Below the pieces are notes generated by a model. That model saw only the letters and a list, made by a program, of their open reading frames with translations, had not been told where the DNA came from and searched no databases. A stretch of 56,374 nt of DNA, filler included, from Sluysia triapertura (taxonomy: Eukaryota), in assembly GCA_046118255.1 (NCBI GenBank). It is 3 parts of 3 records of this genome, joined end to end, with 100 filler letters (N's around TTAATTAATTAA, not from the genome) between each part and the next. Parts side by side here need not be neighbours in the genome. Positions count along the whole stretch, not along the records: positions 31,367 to 44,258 come from JBJNIA010074053.1; 2 more parts are not named here. The stretch is one strand, 5' to 3'. Position numbers and translations under genes: made by a program. Positions 31,367-44,258 of this stretch are shown piece by piece (position 1 is the stretch's first letter; every line of letters starts with the position of its first letter).

Positions 31367-32365
31367 TGCATCATTAGGATCATTATAATTAGGCACTAGT
31401 ACTTTAGTATTAGCAACATAATAATTTGCATATGAACCTTTATGTTTTAATTGTACACCATTAGGTAAAGTAACAATCGATGAGGACAATGGTATTTCGA
31501 TGATTTTATATTGATTTCCATCATAATTTTTCGCTGAATATATCGTATTAACGTCTTTTTCACTTACCAACCATTCATTCGTTAAATCACTTTTATTCAT
31601 AGTTATTAATGTTGTGTAATTAACCAATCTAACAAATCCATCAATATGCATATCGGTTACATCAAGTCCAGGTACACCATCAATCCAAATAATATTGGTA
31701 ACACCGAAATATGTTTTTATAAAATTCTGAAATTGTTCTTCAGTCATTCCTGAATTACGATTTTTATTAATAGTTGAACTTCTTGTCATCATAACCGTAT
31801 TTTTATCATCAATTTCTATTGAACCGCCTTCATTAATTATTTGCAATGAAATATCAATTAACAATACATTTTGTTGCTTAGCAACTTCAGTTGCAACTTG
31901 TTTATCATTTTTATATTTCATTTTACCACCCCAACCATTAAAACCAAATTGTACTATTATAAATGAACCATTTGTACCATTTCTTACATAAATCGGACCA
32001 ACATCGCGTGCCCAAACATCATCAGTTCGTATAATATAGAAATCGACTTTTGTTAAAGAAATATGAGCATTTGTCAGTAATCTAATTATACGATTTTTTT
32101 CGGTATTATCATAAACAATTAAATGAACGTTTTCACTGTCCACCAAAGCTTTAGTCATTTCAATCCATATTGGATCTAATTCATCACGATATTCTTCACC
32201 ATATGTGTATTGGTGTGGCCATATTAACCAAGTCCCTTCATGAGGTTCTTTCTCATCTGGAAATACGTAATTGTATTGTTGACCTTGAATAATTAATATT
32301 TGGTTATACGTAAACCATAACGATAGTAAAGATAACAATCGTATTGGTAAAATGAATTTTTTCAT
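31367..32365 (-). CDS. Porphyromonas-type peptidylarginine deiminase / agmatine deiminase family protein with predicted signal peptide; 3'-truncated by the contig end
   Basis: 333 uninterrupted codons from ATG 32365. Motifs FPDEKEPHEGTWLIWP, DDVWARDVGP, FNGWGGK, EGGSIEID, DMHIDG and SYANYYVANTKVLVPNY. N-terminus MKKFILPIRLLSLLSLWF is basic then hydrophobic. The C-terminal catalytic Cys lies outside the contig. Confidence 0.93.
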
Positions 32366-35034
32366 CTGCAAATATGCAACTGTATTGGATTATATTAAAT
32401 ACAATAATTATTATGAGAATGATGATCTACTTTTCTATAAAATAGAAGTAAACAAGTATTGTAATTAGTGAGATAGAGTAAAATGCAATCGTTTTATACG
32501 CCTTATTTATTTTTAGTAACGAAATTTTAAGTAATGTTCTTTTGTTTAATAAAATGAAATTTTTCTCTAATAGAAACAGTTTCATTGTATTATCATTTGA
32601 ATTATTCTACAATTAAAATAAAAAGGTACAGATATCATCAATTACACTTGTGTTATTTAATAATTAATTACATTTTGTTTAAACAAATAGAATTTTATCA
32701 ATAGTTTAGTCTTCAAATACAATTATAATAAATAACTATCGTTTTGTTGTGTATTTCATTAATAATATTTCAAAATTATTATTTTTGTTAATCCTCTGCT
32801 AATCCCACAAATCTATATTAAAATTAAACAATATTTAATCATTTTAATATAAAAACAACAAAGTTAGTAAATGTAATTAATAAATAAAATAACCTAACAT
32901 AAATGTATAGATTAAAACAACTTATTATTACTTAACATTAAAGCATAATAAATTACGAAATATTAATAATAACAAAAGGAAATTGTTATTATTAATGTTT
33001 ACGAAATTTTTACAACTCCTTTTACAATCATCTTTGAGCTTAATGATTTAGTATTCCTTGTGCAAATCATATGAACATCTTTTGAGAATCGAGACGACAA
33101 TGACAGTTCTGATAACCCCAGAATTAGAATTCATTAATTAATTGATTTAATTAATGATCAACAAATATTTTTCTCTACTTTAACTCGATATAATTTTATT
33201 TAAATTACTTTTTAAATTAAAATAACAATTATTATAATTAACAACATATTTAAAAATAACTATTTAATTTAATTAATTCAATATTCAATTATTCGTAACC
33301 AATTTTCTAATGAAAAATTGTTTTAATGTTCTGCAAACAGTTTTATCTAATAAAGCTTAACTTACACTAATATGATAATTACTTATGCTTTGCTTCAAAA
33401 ACTTGTCTACCATAATTCGTAACTTACAAAAATATGGATGTTTTATTTATAAAGTAATGTAAAGAATAAACGTTAAGTCAGCCTGTTACGGTCTGACAAA
33501 TGCGTCAAAATTTAAAGAAATTAAAGCTTAATAATAAAATAACAATTAGCAATTACATGTATTCGTTATGAACAAAAACTTAATTAATTCAATACTAAAA
33601 ATTTAAAGGAATTCAATATATCAATAATAATACAATATAATAATAATAATAAGGGACATAGTCGCTTAGCACTTAAAATTTTAGGATGATTTTAACCTAA
33701 CCTTTTTAAAGTCCAGGAAAGTTAAGAAATTTTAGGTCCTTCTTTTTACAGTAAGGATTTTAAACTTATAAAAATAAATTTACATTTATGGAATTGCTTG
33801 AAAACTGAAATTCTCCAAATTTTTTCCTTTTGAATTTTTATTCTGATTTTCTTCACCTAAATTTCCCCATTTATATGAAATTTAGGCAGACATCTTGAAT
33901 ATTTATTTCTCTGTTTCAACAAAACAAAATTATATTTTAATTTGTTAAAACAAAGAAATATTAAATATTTTATTTTAATTTTAACTTTAAATATTTTATA
34001 TTAAATTTTACATATATCAAATTTAACTTTAAAATTTAATTTATATTTGTTTTTTAACGTTAAATTTTTTTTATATTATAATAAAAATAATATTTAAACA
34101 TTAAATAAATAATAAAAATTATCTTTATAAAAATAATATCAAATGTCTAAATGCTTACAATTCAACAGTTCTTATTTTCAAAAAAAACATTAGATAAACA
34201 TTTCAAACCCAAATCCAAATTATTTCCATTCGTACTAATCACCTAAGTATGAAAAATTTAATATTTTTAGTTAAAAAAATTAGTTAAAATTTGACTTTGA
34301 CCAATAATATGGTGTCTTTGCAAGAACTCGGACAAATTATATCTATGTCAAAAGATCTAACTAAAATACATCATACATAGTCACGATAATATTATATATT
34401 GTGGTTTTTGAACAGAGTCGGGTTACATTAAACGTCTTATGTCGTAAAGAGGGCGTTCCTCTAACTAAATAATTTAATTATCTATCTAAATAGCAGTACT
34501 CCTTAATGAAGGTCTTATTAAATGCTCAATTAATTACGTAATTAACTGTTTAAAAAAAATTAATTTAATCTACAAATTCTATTAAATGAAAACAAGATTA
34601 TAACTTTATTGCACAAAAAACGAATAATTAAACGTAAAATACAAAGATGATGTTTTAAAATTAAAGCTCCAAGAGCGTTTAAATTATAACTACAATATGT
34701 TAAATGTAGTTTAACCCTCAATATATCGGGAACTAATATTTAAAATAAATGTCATTTTGAATGTATTTTATAATTTTAACTTTGAAAGTTGAAATTTACC
34801 TTAAACAATAAATATTTACCAACACATGGAAAAAAGGAATCCCAGAATTATCGTGAATTGAAGAACTGATCCGTAGATGATGCCAAATTATGAGGTTATT
34901 GAATCAACTAGTAGCTGCGACGGTTAACTAAAAAATTCCACGAAATTTTCCATATGCTGAATTGTAAAAATCAAAATGGCGATGTTCAGTAAACTGATAC
35001 TAGTTTACATACTAGTCATCAGCCAGGAATCGAT

Positions 35035-35069
35035 GGAATGTTCTAGAATCTTCTAGAACATTCTAGAAG
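35035..35069. promoter_or_regulatory. Heat-shock-element array: 7 perfectly alternating nGAAn units
   Basis: GAAtgTTCtaGAAtcTTCtaGAAcaTTCtaGAA at 35036-35068. Confidence 0.65.
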
Positions 35070-35310
35070 CGACTATTTGTTTTTAAAAGCGACTTTTCTT
35101 TTTTCGAAAATAATTTTCTTTTTTGAAAAGAAAATTTTAAATGATGAAACGCATATAACGATGTTTTAAATGATTTTAGAGGGTTGTGAATACAGCCAAA
35201 AAAGGATCCAAATATCAAGAGAAATGAGTGAACGCTATGATTTTATCTGGACGTAGAACAATTTCATTTATAGAACTTTCAAATATTGCAGTATTATTGT
35301 TATTATAAGT

Positions 35311-35360
35311 GTTAGACTGACCGGGAATCGAACACGGCACATCTCGCTGCACACCTGTGC
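35311..35360 (-). other. tRNA 3'-half / B-box-like remnant (possible SINE head fragment)
   Basis: Reverse complement reads GCCGTGTTCGATTCCCGGTCAGTCT, with the T-loop consensus GTTCGATTC. No 5' half or A-box is visible. Confidence 0.35.
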
Positions 35361-35529
35361 ATTTCGATGAATTTATAACGTATTTTAAAATTATGACAAG
35401 TATTTACACGTATAGTATAAATATGAATAATGCATATAAGAGATCAAAGTATCTAAATAAGAATGTTTGGTCCAGGATGAAAAATTTATTGTCTATGGTG
35501 CTACTGTTGTTGCTAGTGCTGCTGTTGAT

Positions 35530-38500
35530 TGTTTATTTATTTATATACGTTCGCAACAATTTATTACATAAAAGGAAAAATTGAAATATTTACAAACATT
35601 CATAGTTATAGTTGTAGTCGTATTGGAAAATTCAAAGGATTTTATTAATTTATTAAAGGGCGGAAAAGAAAGAAACATAATATTATTCACAACGAAAAAG
35701 AAAAGGAAACCGAAAGGTAAGAAAATTAATAGTTAAGTGGGATATTGAAGAGAATGGTCTTTATTAATATTAAAGGAAGATTCTAGGGATAGTTTGATAC
35801 ACTGGCATGCCAAACCAGTAATATCAGCTTTACGGAAACCTAACTTTTTAAGGACAGAAGCATTTTCTGGATCCCACGAGGCAAAACTCCAACTACAAAT
35901 ACGTCTAGGGAGGCGGAACATTTGAGTTGGTCTTGGAGTTTTTGCCTCAGGTCAGAATACTTGGTAATAATCATGAATAGGGGATTTGATGTCTATGAAA
36001 AACAGTTGGGAAGAATTAGTACCTTGCTCTTGAATATCAGGTCTCCTATAATCTCCAACTAATGGGTTTTGGATATCTTTTTTTCTTTGTTTTATTTTAT
36101 TATGTCTTACGCCAGTGATGGTATGTGGGCAGAAACACACCAAGGAGAGGTAAGAGGAAGATTAAGTCGAATGTTTGGGGATAAAAATTAAGTTTCAAAA
36201 TATTATTTCTGGCTTTAGTCATGAAAATCCAACACTGGTTTCTTAATTGTAGGGAAAAAGAACGACCGGATAAAGGACTTTTCATAAAATATTCGACAAT
36301 GCGACCTTGAACTTTACGGGATTTCTAGGAATTGGTTTTGGAAAGGTTAATCAGCTCATGCAGATATTTCCCCACTTTATCTTTATAAAACCGATTAAAA
36401 GTGACTTTATAATCACCAAGGATGTCACATTTAAATTCAGCTTAGTGCGTTCCTCACAATAAACGAAGCTGACATTGATTTTATATTTTCGGAACAGGTT
36501 TAGGATTGATTGGCGAATTTTTGTCTACCATATCTGGACTCTTGAGCGTTTGTCGGCTTTAGCATCATCAGACGTATTCCGTCTGTCAACCTTATTCAGT
36601 CTGGCAGAAGCGACACGAAGTATTTCTTGTAAAGCTATTAAAAAGTCAGAAGGTACAGACTATATTCTGGTGGATGCAGTCATCATACGAGGAAATTAAA
36701 CTGAAGCCACCATGATTTTTATGAGCAAATAAAAAGGAATTTTTAAATGGAAAGTTTTTCAGACCGAGGAAGCCCTTCGGTATATGATATAATTTCTCAT
36801 CATATCCAGTAGTTTGTGGAAGGTTCATGGATTTCCTTGCGTGAGGACTAAGTAATGTTTGGGTGTTTATATTCATTTTGCGAAAATGAAAGGGAAAGCC
36901 AGAGTGAATAAAGTTGCGAAACATGATGAATTTGTTTCTGTAACTTAAAGTAGAGTCCTGTATTTTACGGGCCAGAGTTAGGTCTTCATTGATAAGGTCA
37001 GTCAAATAATGTTTCTTGGTTTCGCCAAATGAAACACCAAGGTAGATCATGTTTTCTCCATCTTCCATGTTCACAATAGGTATATCATTGATAAGATGGG
37101 AAAGGTTTATATTACATTGGATATTGTGAAAGTAAAAACATTTGTTGGAGCGAAAGATAAGATTTGCAGATTTCAGATGTTCTACTATGGATGTAAGTAT
37201 TCGCTGGAGGTAATTATGTGAAGTAGCAATTAGTGAAATATCATCTATATTCCACTAAGTGATATAGAATATTGACCAGAATTAAATATGTGAAAGAGAT
37301 AATCGATGGCTAGACAGAAAAGGGTCATGGAGATATGACAACCCTATTTAACTCTATATTTGATTGGAACGGGATCCGTTACAAGTTAGTTACATTTGTA
37401 ACTCCTAGTACTTCATCACATACATCTTTGATATGGTTAGGGTATGTTGGTGTGGATAGAGCCAAAAGCCTTGGCTAAATCAAGAAATATTACGTATCGC
37501 TCAGTTTCATTAAGAGACTCAGTAATTTCCTGAAGGGGGTGTGGTGTGGAATTATGCTCAGTGCATCCATCAGAACGTAACAACATGGTTTATTAAGTTA
37601 CCACTATGTATCCACGATCGTTTAATATCTTAGTAAAGATACGATATGTACAGTCGAGTATAGCAATTGGTAGCCAGGATGATAAATTTATTCGGTTTAA
37701 TTATAAGTAAGGTGGTGACGGTTTTCCAGGCCCATGGTATTTTTTGAAGGGAAATAATTTTATTAAAGAAAAGACCTCGAAATGTAGCCGATGGATCAAT
37801 ATTTTTAATATTTTGTTTGATCCGGAACAGATATTTTTACAAGATTTTAGGGTGATTTGGATTTCTCTTTCAGTTATTGATGTGTCCATACAGTAAAGCA
37901 GCATTCCAATGTGAGATGGATCGAAAGGAAGAACAATCCCAAATCCATGGTATTTACAGATTTCAATCACCGATGGAATAATGGGAATGATGTATCTGTA
38001 ATCAATTGGAATGCTTTAGTCTGATTCTTTCTGTTTAAGATGTGATCTAATTTTAAATTGGAATAGGATATTGTGAAATTTGGTTGGGAAAAGTTTATGT
38101 ATCAAGTCACAAAATTCTGAAAGGTTATCATTATGAATTATATTACAAAGCGATTGAATAGAGGGATGTGGGTATTTACTTTTTCTGTTCGACGATTGCT
38201 TAATACAGTGGACTCAATGTTGATTATTATTTCCCTTGTGGCAGAACATGAGAATATCAGGTTACGTTTGTATTGTAGAGCGATATTAAAGGGATCACAA
38301 TCAGTAGGACCAACCTTGTATGGATGAATATACTGGGAATGTAGTGTATGCGGTCAAGTCATTTCTAAAAAAAGTCACGCAGGAGATATAAATGACGGTG
38401 CAATAAAAATTGTTATCTATGTTAAAGATAAGAAGAATCCAGTGATTCTGAATGTTTAGGACCAAGTAGAAACGTTACCAAATTGCGCATTTTGGAAGGG

Positions 38501-40470
38501 AAAAATTGTTTAGAAATGCTTGTTCATCGTTGAACAATGCAAAGTTGGCAACAATAGAATGGATCACTACTGAGTTAGCGTCAGAGATGTATGCATCAAA
38601 GAAAGTCATAACTGCGTCCAAAGATAGTCAATCTGACTCTGGTTGTGGAATCCAGATCTTTGGTATCTGGGACAAAATTAAGGTTATTGGAGGTAGTATG
38701 GGTTAGTAAATATTGGAAAAGCAAAGTTAGGTTTTCAAAGACAAGGGAATAGAAATATATAATAACTAGCTGGGTACAAATAAGCTTATGTTAATGTCGT
38801 TTAAGGATATGGATATCGTTAGGGTTCAGTTTTTGGTAATCCCGCAGGAGGTACACTGAACCATGTAGGAGAAGATACAGAACAAAGGATTTGGATGTCA
38901 TGCTCCGGTACACAGGGCATGGGAGTGATCCTTTTCCCTGCGTCGCGGATGTCACTGTTTAATACATTAGTCTGCTCAGTGTGAGACATGGTGAAATCTT
39001 CCCAAGTTTTGATTGCACCACAGGTGCACTTTACCTTTAATTCATTCATAGTGGTGGTGAATTGGTGTTTCCCGATAAAGTGTCTATGGAGTTAGCTATA
39101 ATCAAAGAGTTTCTTAATTTTAAAGCCCTTCATATTACAGTCGAAGAGAGAACATTTAATATAACTATTAGGGGAGATAAAGATGTGAGAGTCAAATCTA
39201 AGTGATACAAATGTTGAGGTTTAGTCATCGAGGTCAGCCGATTCAGAAATTGATTGGTTCTCAGTAGACTTTCAGGAACTTTCAGGACACTCGTTAGGGA
39301 TAAGATCAACAGGATCGTGGTGCAGGATAAATTTACATCAGAATCTTGTAGTGGTGCATCTTCTGTAACGCAAAGGCTTTCTAGGATTACCTTTAGGGAA
39401 ATAGGAGGTAAAACAGTAGTCGACGTGGGAATGGAAGTATCAATATCTTTAGGAAGAGGAGGAGAAGGAATAGGCAAATGTCCTGTGTCATTGAGTTTGA
39501 CACAGAAATATGTATTATCATTTAATGTGATAATAAAGTTGTTGGTGAAGAAACCTTTAGTAATATATAGGAGAGGTTTCATCACTGCTTCAGTATGAGG
39601 CGCCACTTTTATCTGAAAATTATTACTTTTGAATGGTTCCTCTTTCAACTCATTATATATACGTGGTAAGTGAGGTCTAGGTCGATTATGCCTGACATTT
39701 TGAAGACGCTGGTTGTATGGAGCCACTGAAGAATTAGAGTGGGTAGTGTCATTGATTTTGTAACTTGGGTTAGAGTTATTTTCCCTTTGATATCCGTCCA
39801 TTTTGGAATACAGACGGGTGTCAAGTCCTTGGGTTTTTTTCTTTGGCACTGGTTTCAAAATCCCCCTATTTTGTACCTCAGAGTATGGCTGAGGTGCCGA
39901 TTGAAATCCCAAAAGTAGGGTGGGACGAAGTTTCGGTTTTCCTTTAAGGAAAAGCGGTTCAGGTCGAAGAAAAGCACGAATTGCCTGAGGATCAATTTTT
40001 AGAAATGAGCGCAAAGGTCTCCAAATACCCACAAACCATGACATCAGTTGGTTGGTCTGTAATTGAAATGGAATGGGGCATTTAGGAGAAATATGATATC
40101 CCTAAGATTTAGTATGGTTCAATTGCGCTGACAGAGTCCTTTCTATATAGCATTTGTATTTTGATCATTGTGCCGTCGTAAAGAGTCGAACATAGGCTCA
40201 ATCGTCATTAGTATCAATAACAACGAGAGAGAAATGAGCTCTAGTGTAAATAATTGTGCAGATAGTGGGTTAACCGGGACATATCCTAGTATTGATCTTT
40301 TAAAAAGATAAGGAATTTTGTAGTAGGATTCTCATAATGAAGTAATGAGGACCTTCCCCTATGAGTGGTTTAGAATGGATATAAGTTTTTATTGATAACA
40401 ACCCCTTATAGAATGGGAGAATAAAGATGGATGAATGGACAACTCCTTATATCTTTTACAAAGGTGGTAC
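35530..40470 (-). mobile_element. Decayed R2-group non-LTR retrotransposon with Ulp1-like protease (NeSL-like architecture)
   Basis: Minus-strand order: zinc-finger remnants (~39100-38990); Ulp1/C48 motifs *LSLDAV, LNIQNHWILL, GPTDCDPF (~38630-38290); RT motifs WLPIAIL, VIFLDLAKAFG, VK*GCHISMTLF, IDDISL, YLGV (~37700-37030); REL motif RHN..RPDI..IDIKSP (~36110-35980); then AATAAA and a (TAAA)n 3' end. Element ends are approximate. Confidence 0.85.
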
Positions 40471-41519
40471 GACAATAAATAAATAAAAATAAAAATGATT
40501 TGCATAAATAAATGATAAAAACATCATACAAACAATTAAAATTCAAATACTTCAGAAATAAAGATAGCATCACAACATTGTGGAACTTTTCAAAGCAGCT
40601 TGGTAGATGCAATGGTACTTTGCATTATTATCGTGATAATTTTGAAGGATGTGATTTGACTCGGTTGGAGGAATATTCTCCGGAAAATGTCCCAAAAATA
40701 AAAATGAAAATTTAAACATGTTGAAACAAATTTATTTTCGCTCGTCAATTATTACGCGGGCAATTGTTAGGGAATTGACGCAACGCCAGTGCTCATTACT
40801 GCAAGATAAACAGGACACATATGTTAAATTTCAATAACGAGTAAGGATTAAGGAACTAAATTATTGGTTAAAGAGAGGGAAACTTATTATAGAGATGTTA
40901 TATGATGAAAATTCTGAACAGAGAAAAATGGTATGAAAACATCAGAATTATTGATAATAGATTAATATTATTTGATTACATATATCACTATTCATTATCG
41001 AAGAATACATTTTGATTACAGATGTTACTGTTTGAATGATAAAACATTATTAGAAAATGATTTTGAAAATTGATTATGCAAACTTTCCCAAATTAGTAAT
41101 AAATGCAACATAAATTAAAATAAAATAACTCATAAAATATTATTGATATAGGAGTGGCCAGTTATTACATTGTTAATTAGTTTTGTTGCAATTTTGATAA
41201 ATAACATTTTATAACAACTTAGTGTAAATTATTACATTTTAGACAACATTTCCATTTCCGTTATTAGTGGGACAAATTAAAACTCAAATTAATACACTCA
41301 AGACTCAAATTATTAAACATATAAAATTATAAAACCTCTAAAAAACTTAAAATAAGACAACGAAATTCCTATAATAACCTTCTTTTTTTATTTTTCTTTC
41401 TTTTAACTCGCATTTTATTTCTTTCAACACTTTTGCCAACAGGAATTTCATCTATATCTTCTGCTTTGAAATTTTTACATCATACTACTCTGTAAAACAA
41501 TTAAATAAACTGCGGGAAA

Positions 41520-42802
41520 ATGTTGACTAGAAACTCTTCAATTAACAAATAAAGACATAATCATAAGTTGTATGAACACTTACAGAAAGAATGCGAAAAT
41601 AAGTGTAATCGAATGTACGAATGTACAACTGCATAAATAAACATTTGAATCGAAGGAAGATTCCATAAAAGTTAAAGATAAACTTAATAATGCATTTTCT
41701 GAACTGAAATATAAATCAAGTTCTACTATGAAATTTGGTTTGTTAAAAAGTTACAGCTTAAAAAAGAAAAACTAAAAAAAGCCTTAAATGATGAAAGATT
41801 CAAGTCTCAATTAAAATAACTGAATTAAATTCTTTTTTGGTATCGAGTTTGGAGAACATGATTTCAAATATAATCAGCTTCAGTTGGAGCTAAGCAATGA
41901 GGGTCGAGAATCATTTAAAAAGATTATTAATTCGATGATTGATCAGAAAGTAAATTTATGAAATGAATGCAGGGGCGAACTAAGGTCTAGGCAACCTAAG
42001 CAAGTGACTAGGGCCCGAAAATTAGGTTTTTAATTTTTATAATTAATTTTTATTTTTATTTAACAGAAAAACGTGATATTCATAATTATTGTCGAATCGT
42101 TGATTGATGAAGTCGATGTGTGTAAATACAATCGACCCTTTACTATGCACATGTTTAAAAAGTCATGACTAAAAATAGGCCAGCTTTAATCTTAGTCCGC
42201 CACTGAATGAATGCGATCATCGTATCAGAAAAATGAGAACATAATTGGACAGTCGCATTCGACAATTCATGAATCAAATTCATGAATTGGAAGTGAAAAT
42301 GAAACTTGGAATCAAAAGTGCAGAAGTACTGAAATTAAAGAATCATTTGGAAGTATCGAATTCTCATTTGTCTGAAGAGAACAATATGATTCATAATCAG
42401 AAACAGACACTCTACAAAGAAATCAGATTGAATAAAATGGTAATCAAAGAAGTGTCTTCAACAACACTACCAGAAACAATTCATACAATCAAATATGTTA
42501 ATACAAATTCCATAGCTACTGCCGCTACAGATTCAGCAACTAATATTGTACAAAATCGATTAAATTTTATTCTATGCTGTAATAGTTTATCAGACCGGAT
42601 TCGTTACTATGGACCAGACTTTGTGAAGGGTCTGAAGCATATCAAATTATTAAAGCATTATCAACAATACTTCTCTTATATCCAGAAGATGAGAACAAAA
42701 TTAAGCATATATTGGATACTCGATTTTCTCGGTTTTCTACTGCCAACAAATCTAACTCGAATTCAAAGTCAGGAAATTGAGGAAAAAGAAACAAATTCTT
42801 AA
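41520..42802 (+). pseudogene. Decayed coiled-coil-like coding region of unknown family
   Basis: After removing the MITE and one TSD, the frame QLELSNEGRESFKKIINSMIDQKVNL*NECDHRIRKMRT*LDSRIRQF runs into ORF 42245-42802. Confidence 0.4.
41970..42205. mobile_element. hAT-type MITE, 236 bp
   Basis: TIRs CAGGGGCGAACTAAG and CTTAGTCCGCCACTG. Perfect 8-bp TSD AATGAATG at 41962-41969 and 42206-42213. Confidence 0.93.
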
Positions 42803-42833
42803 CTATCTCAATTATCTATCGTTTAATTGACTT

Positions 42834-42880
42834 ATAATAATAATAATAATAATAATTATTATTATTATTATTATTATTAT
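42834..42880. repeat. Head-to-head (TAA)n/(TTA)n microsatellite forming a palindrome
   Basis: ataataataataataataat is followed directly by tattattattattattattatt. Confidence 0.9.
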
Positions 42881-43024
42881 GATAACAACAAAATAATTAC
42901 TGCATCGTAATAATTACTGATACCCAAATTAGAAAAGCTCACTTAATTTTTGTTATTATAAAGAATTTTAATGATTAAAAGTCAAAAAATCCAAGCTCTA
43001 GTTAAAATCAGTGTCATCATATTA

Positions 43025-43221
43025 AAGCTAATTAACATAAAATATGAAACAAATGAAATAAAGCTACATTATACCAAAGTTAATTAACATAAAGTATAAA
43101 AGGAATGAAGTAATGCTCATTGCACCACAACTAATTAACATGACGTATGAAACAAGTGAAATAAAGCTCATTGTACCGAAGCTAGTTAACGCATTATATA
43201 TAAAACGTGAAATAAAGCTGG
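43025..43221. repeat. ~51-bp tandem repeat, ~4 copies
   Basis: Unit approximately agctaattaacataaaatatgaaacaaatgaaataaagctcattgtaccaa. Confidence 0.85.
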
Positions 43222-44258
43222 ATAACGAATCAAACCTACCAATAGAAGGTGTTAAACCATAACTATCAATCCAAGCCTGCAGATCTTGTCATTTCTCATA
43301 GCATCATATTGCAAAAGAGATTAAAATAAGAATCGGTAATTATTCTGATTCATTCTATTGTAAAATAAAATTTTGTCTATAAAACATTTATTTGTTATCT
43401 TAGTTTGTTTTTCATCCTCCCTAATTTATCAAATAACGTCACGATATTAATTTTTATAATTTTGAATTAACAAAAGTATTAATTATAATTTATAATCAGA
43501 TAATTTATAATCTTGTCTAAATAGCGTTACAATAATATTAAATAATAACATAATTATAATATCCAATTTAATGTCTCCAAACTCTTATTTAAAATAGAGC
43601 ATAAGAATGAGCACTATATTTTATACGAGAATGATCAATAGTACAACACTGTCGGAAACTCAAAGTTGATATTTTAATCAAGTAGGATTAAAAACAGTGC
43701 ATCATAAATAAAATAAAAAAAATATAAAATAATATTATTTAAAAAATAATTAAAAATAGATTTTTCATGGATTTCATCACTGTTTTAAATATAGCTAATT
43801 GTCAAATAATCTAAACTGCAGATAACTTTGATAAGCGAGAAACTAATAATTTAACGCAATTTTTTTCTGTAAAGTTGTAACCTAGTATATNNNNNNNNNN
43901 NNNNNNNNNNNNNNNNNNNNNNNNNNNNNNNNNNNNNNNNNNNNNNNNNNNNNNNNNNNNNNNNNNNNNNNNNNNNNNNNNNNNNNNNNNNNNNNNNNNN
44001 NNNNNNNNNNNNNNNNNNNNNNNNNNNNNNNNNNNNNNNNNNNNNNNCACTGACATGAGATAAAATTAACTGTTTATATAAAATGTAGACATTTTTTAAA
44101 AAATAATAATTCCAACTGTGAACCATTAAATGTCTGACCTGACAAGTTATATATTATTATATCTGATATATTTCTAATTTTTTTTATCAATAGTCCTTAT
44201 ATAATCTAATTAGTAAAATAATTTATAATACTTTTTAAAATTTGTATAATTCTTAATT

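Follow-up and report, generated by a model that had tools for sequence, protein, structure and literature searches.

How does a gene of bacterial type, encoding a protein of the PAD_porph family, come to lie at the end of a contig of eukaryotic DNA, and what would its product do there? The window, by which we mean the whole 56,374-nucleotide stretch from Sluysia triapertura (GCA_046118255.1) that was analysed, consists of three joined parts. The gene is found in the part running from 31367 to 44258 (JBJNIA010074053.1), a piece of 12.9 kb whose sole run of N is at 43891-44047. A first-pass annotation had put the gene forward as a candidate for horizontal transfer, and this reading is supported by the analysis presented here. 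We consider it probable that a gene for an exported PAD_porph hydrolase passed from Bacteroidota into an AT-rich, repeat-rich eukaryote nuclear genome and has been ameliorated since. Transfer of this kind has already been described for the centipede protein centiPAD, and the present case is no new category. The gene and its product, which we refer to as the window gene and the window protein, have the following features.

31367 to 32365, minus strand: PAD_porph coding sequence (Pfam E-value 5.8e-70; 0 stops; collinear with Bacteroidota homologues of 370-380 aa).
32282 to 32365, minus strand: signal-peptide-like N-terminus, residues 1-28 (from hydropathy only).
31994 to 32026, minus strand: motif TDDVWARDVGP, residues 114-124, with the putative guanidino-binding Asp (from homologue alignment).
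31820 to 31834, minus strand: motif NEGGS, residues 178-182, with the conserved EGG acid of the family (from homologue alignment).
31634 to 31657, minus strand: motif TDMHIDGF, residues 237-244, with the putative catalytic His240 and Asp242 (from homologue alignment).
31409 to 31438, minus strand: motif GSYANYYVAN, residues 310-319, with a conserved Asn (from homologue alignment).

The reading frame begins with an ATG at 32365 on the minus strand and continues through 333 stop-free codons up to the contig edge at 31367, while the remaining five frames of the same interval have 16-52 stops each. At the base composition of the gene about 9% of random codons are expected to be stops, which gives P ~2e-14 for 0/333. 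The translation matches the Pfam family PAD_porph (PF04371) with an E-value of 5.8e-70 and 236.5 bits over profile positions 2-282 of 321, above the gathering cut-off of 25 bits. It is collinear with bacterial homologues of 370-380 residues, showing a single one-residue gap and no intron-sized break, and the visible frame is therefore read as being without an intron. The final visible codons at the edge still align with the conserved sequence VPNYNDPNDA. By the same alignment the visible protein ends about 38 residues short of the C-terminus of its homologues at the contig edge, and the GG-x-HC-x-TQQ motif with its catalytic Cys would fall past that edge, as would the stop codon and the 3' signals of the gene.

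The GC content of the gene is 29.2%, with 17.7% at third codon positions (GC3), near the composition of its flanks (21.4% GC over the approximately 2.6 kb upstream, 32372-35000), and this composition supports amelioration to the host. Both the uninterrupted, intronless frame and the AT-richness shared with the surroundings agree with the first-pass annotation. GC3 in the bacterial homologues has a median of 33.5%, with values of 15-22% in some. GC content alone was rejected as proof of amelioration, since GC3 reaches 15% in one of these homologues.

The relatives of the window protein are bacterial and rather distant. A word search of 5.8 billion proteins returned 1802 matches, the best of them 51-55% identical, and the named matches among the best 120 of the 1802 are all from Bacteroidota (Flavobacterium, Elizabethkingia, Empedobacter, Saprospiraceae). 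Scanning one genome for each prokaryotic species yielded 80 loci with 45-54% identity, which except for a few oddly labelled bins were almost all from Bacteroidota, and the nearest relatives sit in dense bacterial gene arrays. No relative more than 56% identical to the window protein was found in an exhaustive HMMER search of 1.84 billion cluster representatives, nor was there one in the 5.8 billion-protein set.

In a maximum-likelihood tree of 51 rows (LG+C20+F+G4, rooted with 12 distantly related members of the family), the window protein is placed within a clade of 25 rows with an ultrafast bootstrap of 99 and an SH-aLRT of 96, the remaining 24 rows being of Bacteroidota type only; this nesting upholds the bacterial origin that had been proposed for the gene. 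The window protein forms the basal branch of the clade, with a length of 1.11 changes per site compared with about 0.1-0.6 for the others, and its basal placement may be a long-branch effect. Identity between the window protein and each bacterial clade member is about 52%, against a median of 69% for the members among themselves. Of the 105 alignment columns with conservation of 95% or more in bacteria, the window protein keeps 86 and has changed 19 (18%), including the change of RDNGP to RDVGP.

The tree also bears on the rival explanation that survives best, namely that secreted PAD_porph proteins had long been resident in eukaryotes and that the gene descends from this older lineage, whether by vertical inheritance or by passage from eukaryote to eukaryote, and not directly from Bacteroidota. 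The case for it centres on one sequence, P0129 (L089 473-1810, JGI sample 3300017360), a 2-kb contig in which the untranslated flanks are long and the single ORF encodes a signal peptide and a Ser/Thr-rich linker, which together give it the appearance of a eukaryotic transcript. Alone among 342 homologues, P0129 and the window protein have RDVGP in common, and they also share YTYG, W-L-[IM]-WPH, EMTKAL and FYII; an AU test does not reject a clade of the two (p 0.27). However, the free tree sets P0129 outside the 99/96 clade that contains the window protein, and the identity between the two proteins is 43-46%, below the 51-55% seen with Bacteroidota. Both are long branches whose common motifs may be convergent, and the pair was named only after the tree had been seen. 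We therefore regard an older eukaryotic lineage as unlikely, and direct transfer from Bacteroidota as the better account. P0129 may itself be another eukaryotic capture of this enzyme clade.

Export is a feature of this group of enzymes in bacteria. The exported Bacteroidota proteins (from Flavobacterium, Pedobacter, Chryseobacterium, Saprospiraceae and others) are lipoproteins of 370-380 aa, or proteins of 410-540 aa with a Por_Secre_tail, which is the sorting domain of type IX secretion (T9SS) and is present in P0121 and P0125. They resemble the window protein in being 51-55% identical to it and collinear with it, in having the same visible active-site motifs and in belonging to the same 99/96 clade; the window gene differs from them in its lack of a lipobox, its RDVGP sequence, its AT-rich codons and the absence of bacterial neighbour genes. 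Among the top matches, an N-terminal extension of at least 20 residues is found in 115/117, with a Cys within it in 111/117 and a strict lipobox in 78. To judge from these signals the donor clade is already an exported one, its members being predicted lipoproteins or T9SS cargo, and the transfer would therefore have altered the type of export signal, export itself not being new.

The N-terminus of the window protein begins with MKK, followed by a hydrophobic core, LLSLLSLWF (Kyte-Doolittle values up to 2.2), and a possible cleavage site between ...IQG and QQ, a hydropathy pattern that matches the signal-peptide-like N-terminus noted at first pass. There is no Cys in the visible 333 residues, and both the lipobox Cys and the other conserved Cys are absent. 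The product is thus predicted to be secreted by way of an ordinary ER signal peptide. The first-pass annotation had seen in the gene a domesticated exported enzyme; the exported character stands, but it would not have been gained on domestication, given that the donor clade consists of lipoproteins and T9SS cargo.

The course of events that we favour would start from a bacterium of the Bacteroidota in which the exported enzyme was either a lipoprotein or a cargo of type IX secretion. The gene would then have entered the nuclear genome of a eukaryote and stayed there long enough to take on the base composition of its host. In the eukaryote the lipobox Cys would have been lost and the N-terminus would have come to read as an ER signal peptide, so that the product should be secreted. 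Once outside the cell, it would hydrolyse a guanidino group in a Cys-dependent reaction that releases ammonia.

The active-site Asp, Glu (EGG), His-x-Asp and Asn motifs, that is to say all those that are visible, are intact and align with invariant columns, and in RDVGP the window protein has a Val where bacteria usually have Asn (RDNGP). The window protein matches Chlorobium 1XKN with 145 bits, the agmatine deiminase of H. pylori (3HVM) with an E-value of 3e-25, and Arabidopsis AIH and E. faecalis AgDI with 72-74 bits. Canonical AguA proteins (E. faecalis 2JER, H. pylori 3HVM, A. thaliana AIH 1VKP) share with it the Pfam family and the WxRD, EGG, HxD and YxN motifs, but match it with only 72-92 bits and are cytoplasmic proteins without a signal peptide. 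The P. gingivalis peptidylarginine deiminase PPAD (4YT9, 5AK7), a T9SS-secreted enzyme with a Cys/His/Asp mechanism, belongs to a Pfam family of the same name, but is matched with 31 bits (E-value 9e-7) over 160 residues, namely residues 69-228 only, the visible part of the window protein ending before the C-terminus. Scores against the AguA models were under the NCBIfam curated cut-off for the equivalog TIGR03380 (131.1 bits, cut-off 381.8) and under the cut-off for NF010070 (140 bits, cut-off 483). On these comparisons the window protein is far nearer in sequence to the agmatine deiminases than to PPAD. We infer that it is an exported, Cys-dependent guanidino hydrolase that would release ammonia.

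As to the substrate, free agmatine, with N-carbamoylputrescine as the product, appears somewhat the best candidate. It is favoured because the match to 3HVM (E-value 3e-25) is so much stronger than that to PPAD (9e-7), and because one bacterial member close to the clade adjoins two aguA-like genes, a CN_hydrolase gene and an MFS transporter gene, CN_hydrolase being the usual aguB partner. Peptidyl or terminal arginine, as has been proposed for centiPAD, is possible but a good deal less probable, and another guanidino compound would be an unlikely substrate. The other bacterial homologues have unrelated neighbours in contexts that are not conserved, most of them without an aguB partner, and gene context across the homologues is for this reason of little guidance on the substrate. 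We know of no biochemically characterised member of the exported Bacteroidota clade. At one bacterial locus, L090 (2795-10525), PAD_porph occurs as three paralogues, one of which has a long extension at its N-terminus and measures 564 aa; CN_hydrolase and an MFS transporter are encoded there too. This company is a hint that the family's exported members take part in agmatine or polyamine use.

Two features describe the DNA upstream of the gene, neither of them assigned to a strand.

32366 to 33148: single-copy ORF-free upstream DNA, putative promoter and 5' UTR (~20% GC; Logan contig depth 15.3).
33149 to 35400: AT-rich dispersed and short tandem repeats (300-5700x in the same run).

No ORF of at least 60 aa occurs within 32372-35000. 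A Logan contig of 2064 nt, with a depth of 15.3, spans 31414-33497, and thus joins the gene to 1.1 kb of its flank before ending in a repeat of about 300x. One would not find in a bacterial genome 1.1 kb of DNA that lacks ORFs, has about 20% GC and leads into a high-copy repeat, which is why the setting is taken to be non-bacterial; that the flanks of the gene are eukaryote-like is supported. The assembly has no N between the gene and the retrotransposon remnant described below, and the Logan contigs confirm the 1.1 kb flank only, with no bridge to the remnant, for which the linkage is that given by the original assembly. Several claims made at first pass are sustained by these data: the non-coding upstream DNA without operon partners corresponds to approximately 2.6 kb without an ORF of at least 60 aa; the residence in eukaryotic DNA fits a repeat-rich, ORF-free, AT-rich flank of which 1.1 kb is confirmed by the Logan contig; and the gap-free stretch shared with a non-LTR element holds, the only N run being that at 43891-44047 and the remnant being recognised by motifs and a weak Pfam match. 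Directly before the ATG, the sequence 'atatttgcag' (32366-32375, minus strand) resembles a 3' splice or trans-splice acceptor, a likeness that could have arisen by chance in AT-rich DNA.

A single public run contains the stretch (0.95 of the words sampled), and this run may be the source of the assembly itself. In this run the gene is at about 15x, further unique pieces are at 5-25x, and repeats reach up to 2400-5700x. Depth departs from that of the gene in two places. Over 31367-31413, the last ~47 nt at the edge, the summed depth is estimated from the first depth bin at ~330x, against the 15x of the gene, and around 32234 it is 77x, with three extra short contigs contributing. These rises lie at the two most conserved coding stretches and may represent paralogues, or a repeat at the contig break. 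The sole variant within the coding sequence, C>A at 32234, is read as a third-position change, GGG>GGT, that leaves Gly unchanged.

The open frame, the intact motifs, the 86 conserved columns kept out of 105 and the synonymous nature of this variant argue for a gene that has been kept by selection. The long branch and changes such as RDVGP for RDNGP point to a shift in function or to relaxed constraint. A second rival explanation takes the latter further and holds that the transferred gene is non-functional, being a relic whose frame is open by accident, or a copy truncated or interrupted just past the edge. It can draw on the very long branch with 18% of strongly conserved columns changed, on the raised depth of the last ~47 nt, which might mark an inserted repeat or a break in the assembly within the gene, and on the finding that none of the public RNA runs screened contains the gene. 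Yet a frame with no stop in 333 codons, with every visible catalytic motif intact and with its last codons aligning at the edge with a conserved sequence is hard to reconcile with decay, and we think a relic improbable, a little more so than the older eukaryotic lineage.

The weakest explanation, a gene from a bacterial contaminant or symbiont misjoined to eukaryotic DNA by the assembler, has in its favour that the nearest relatives are all bacterial, that the gene is intronless and at the very end of its contig, that low-GC Bacteroidota exist (GC3 of 15-22% in some homologues) and that the sequence occurs in one run only, possibly the assembly's own source, but we judge it very improbable, given that an independent de Bruijn contig runs from the gene through 1.1 kb of ORF-free DNA into a repeat, that its depth of 15.3 resembles that of neighbouring unique pieces (5-25), that the window protein differs by 45-50% from all bacteria sampled, has a branch three- to fourfold longer than theirs and has lost the lipobox Cys and other conserved Cys, and that no bacterial genes adjoin the gene.

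Transfer from Bacteroidota, the preferred reading, has its nearest known parallel in centipedes. A PAD_porph protein of their venoms, centiPAD, was acquired from bacteria on two occasions, in Thereuopoda from Gammaproteobacteria and in Lithobius from Bacteroidetes (Undheim & Jenner 2021, PMC7864903). [quoted passage not shown] The centiPAD of Lithobius forficatus and Lithobius sp. occurs in venom and in telopodal secretion (PMC7864903, PMC11170834). It is, like the window protein, a PAD_porph of Bacteroidota descent, belonging to the Chryseobacterium/Flavobacterium-type agmatine-deiminase clade, and it too has a signal peptide without a lipobox and keeps the catalytic motifs (Supplementary Data 5, PMC7864903).

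The two also differ. CentiPAD has 38% GC, as against the 29% of the window gene, and its expression in venom is known, whereas the window gene is known from genomic DNA alone. In a by-eye comparison with the Lithobius sequences, centiPAD carries an insertion of 4-5 residues between 'KSS' and 'RN' (SS..SQ....RN), where the window protein reads SSTINKNRN and has none. Identity of the window protein to that of Lithobius sp. is about 58% over an 84-residue conserved block (a by-eye count), which is no closer than its identity to the bacterial consensus over that block. Since the window protein lacks the Lithobius insertion and is no closer to Lithobius than to the bacterial consensus, the window gene is probably an acquisition separate from Lithobius centiPAD, and not its orthologue. 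Motifs of the window protein were not found in the portions of the PMC7864903 supplement alignments that were compared, a negative that is uninformative since the alignments are gapped and cut short, and a search of the literature on horizontal transfer of agmatine deiminase in rotifers, nematodes and tardigrades found nothing relevant.

Among the bacterial homologues, the Lithobius-type insertion is found in P0121, P0123 and L059 only, with a larger one in P0128 (T9SS-cargo subclade). These three, P0121 (L087 804-2411), P0123 and L059, are T9SS-tailed Bacteroidota PAD_porph proteins that share the 5-residue SQSPA... insertion with the Lithobius centiPADs, and the shared insertion narrows down which subclade was the likely donor of centiPAD.

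Vertebrate PADI enzymes deiminate a guanidino group, as is inferred for the window protein, and have been proposed to have entered animals by horizontal transfer from cyanobacteria (PMC8826395). They nevertheless constitute a separate family with other domains; they depend on calcium, are located inside the cell, and showed no sequence match in this analysis.

A gene of the same clade as Lithobius centiPAD, found in genomic DNA beside eukaryote-type repeats and a retrotransposon, supports the chromosomal integration of an exported bacterial enzyme. The absence of the Lithobius insertion from the window gene suggests that capture happened more than once, and repeated capture of an exported deiminase would point to a ready-made extracellular function. 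A more specific proposal, which we consider unlikely, is that an animal distinct from Lithobius and Thereuopoda possesses a small set of related secreted deiminases, the window gene among them, captured independently from Bacteroidota and used outside the cell, in a venom or in a digestive or defensive fluid, on arginine residues or agmatine of prey, host or microbes. If this were true, the same exported enzyme of bacteria would have been recruited convergently for a third time, animals would have a way to citrullinate extracellular targets that does not depend on PADI, and the rises in depth around ~32234 and at the 3' edge would be paralogues.

The rest of the piece is occupied in large part by a decayed retrotransposon, whose recognisable parts are all on the minus strand.

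35700 to 40101, minus strand: decayed non-LTR retrotransposon with many stops and frameshifts (from motifs; RVT_1 E-value 2.8e-4; high copy number).
39133 to 40101, minus strand: putative N-terminal ORF of the retrotransposon (from its reading frame).
38822 to 39091, minus strand: C2H2-like finger (from its motif).
37440 to 37589, minus strand: reverse transcriptase (RT) motif FLDLAKAFGS (from its motif).
36649 to 37254, minus strand: RT motif IDD (from its motif).
35955 to 36161, minus strand: restriction-like endonuclease signature CFCPH...RRPD-x13-D-I-K, downstream of the RT (from its motif).

Pfam recognises the remnant through RVT_1 only, at an E-value of 2.8e-4 and below the cut-off. An Atlas feature search with the RT piece gave as nearest clusters eukaryotic RT fragments in every case, while a word search with a 202-aa RT piece and PDB searches with the RT and endonuclease pieces returned no match. 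In the run, pieces of the element reach copy numbers in the hundreds to thousands. Its RT and endonuclease motifs would place it in the R2/NeSL/CRE-type group, and a NeSL-like element is plausible.

No Pfam match was obtained for the other ORFs of at least 60 aa in the piece (39130-40044, 42245-42802 and others), and no Rfam match within 31367-44258. The ORF at 42245-42802 (plus strand, 185 aa) adjoins a GC-rich stretch, 'CAGGGGCG...' / 'CAGGGGCGAAC...', at ~41970. This region may be what the first-pass annotation took for a hAT element, and a search near 41970 for the terminal inverted repeats of a 'hAT MITE' found none that were convincing. Further along, at 43015-43219, a 51-nt unit occurs four times in tandem, with copies that match the reference copy at 71-80%.
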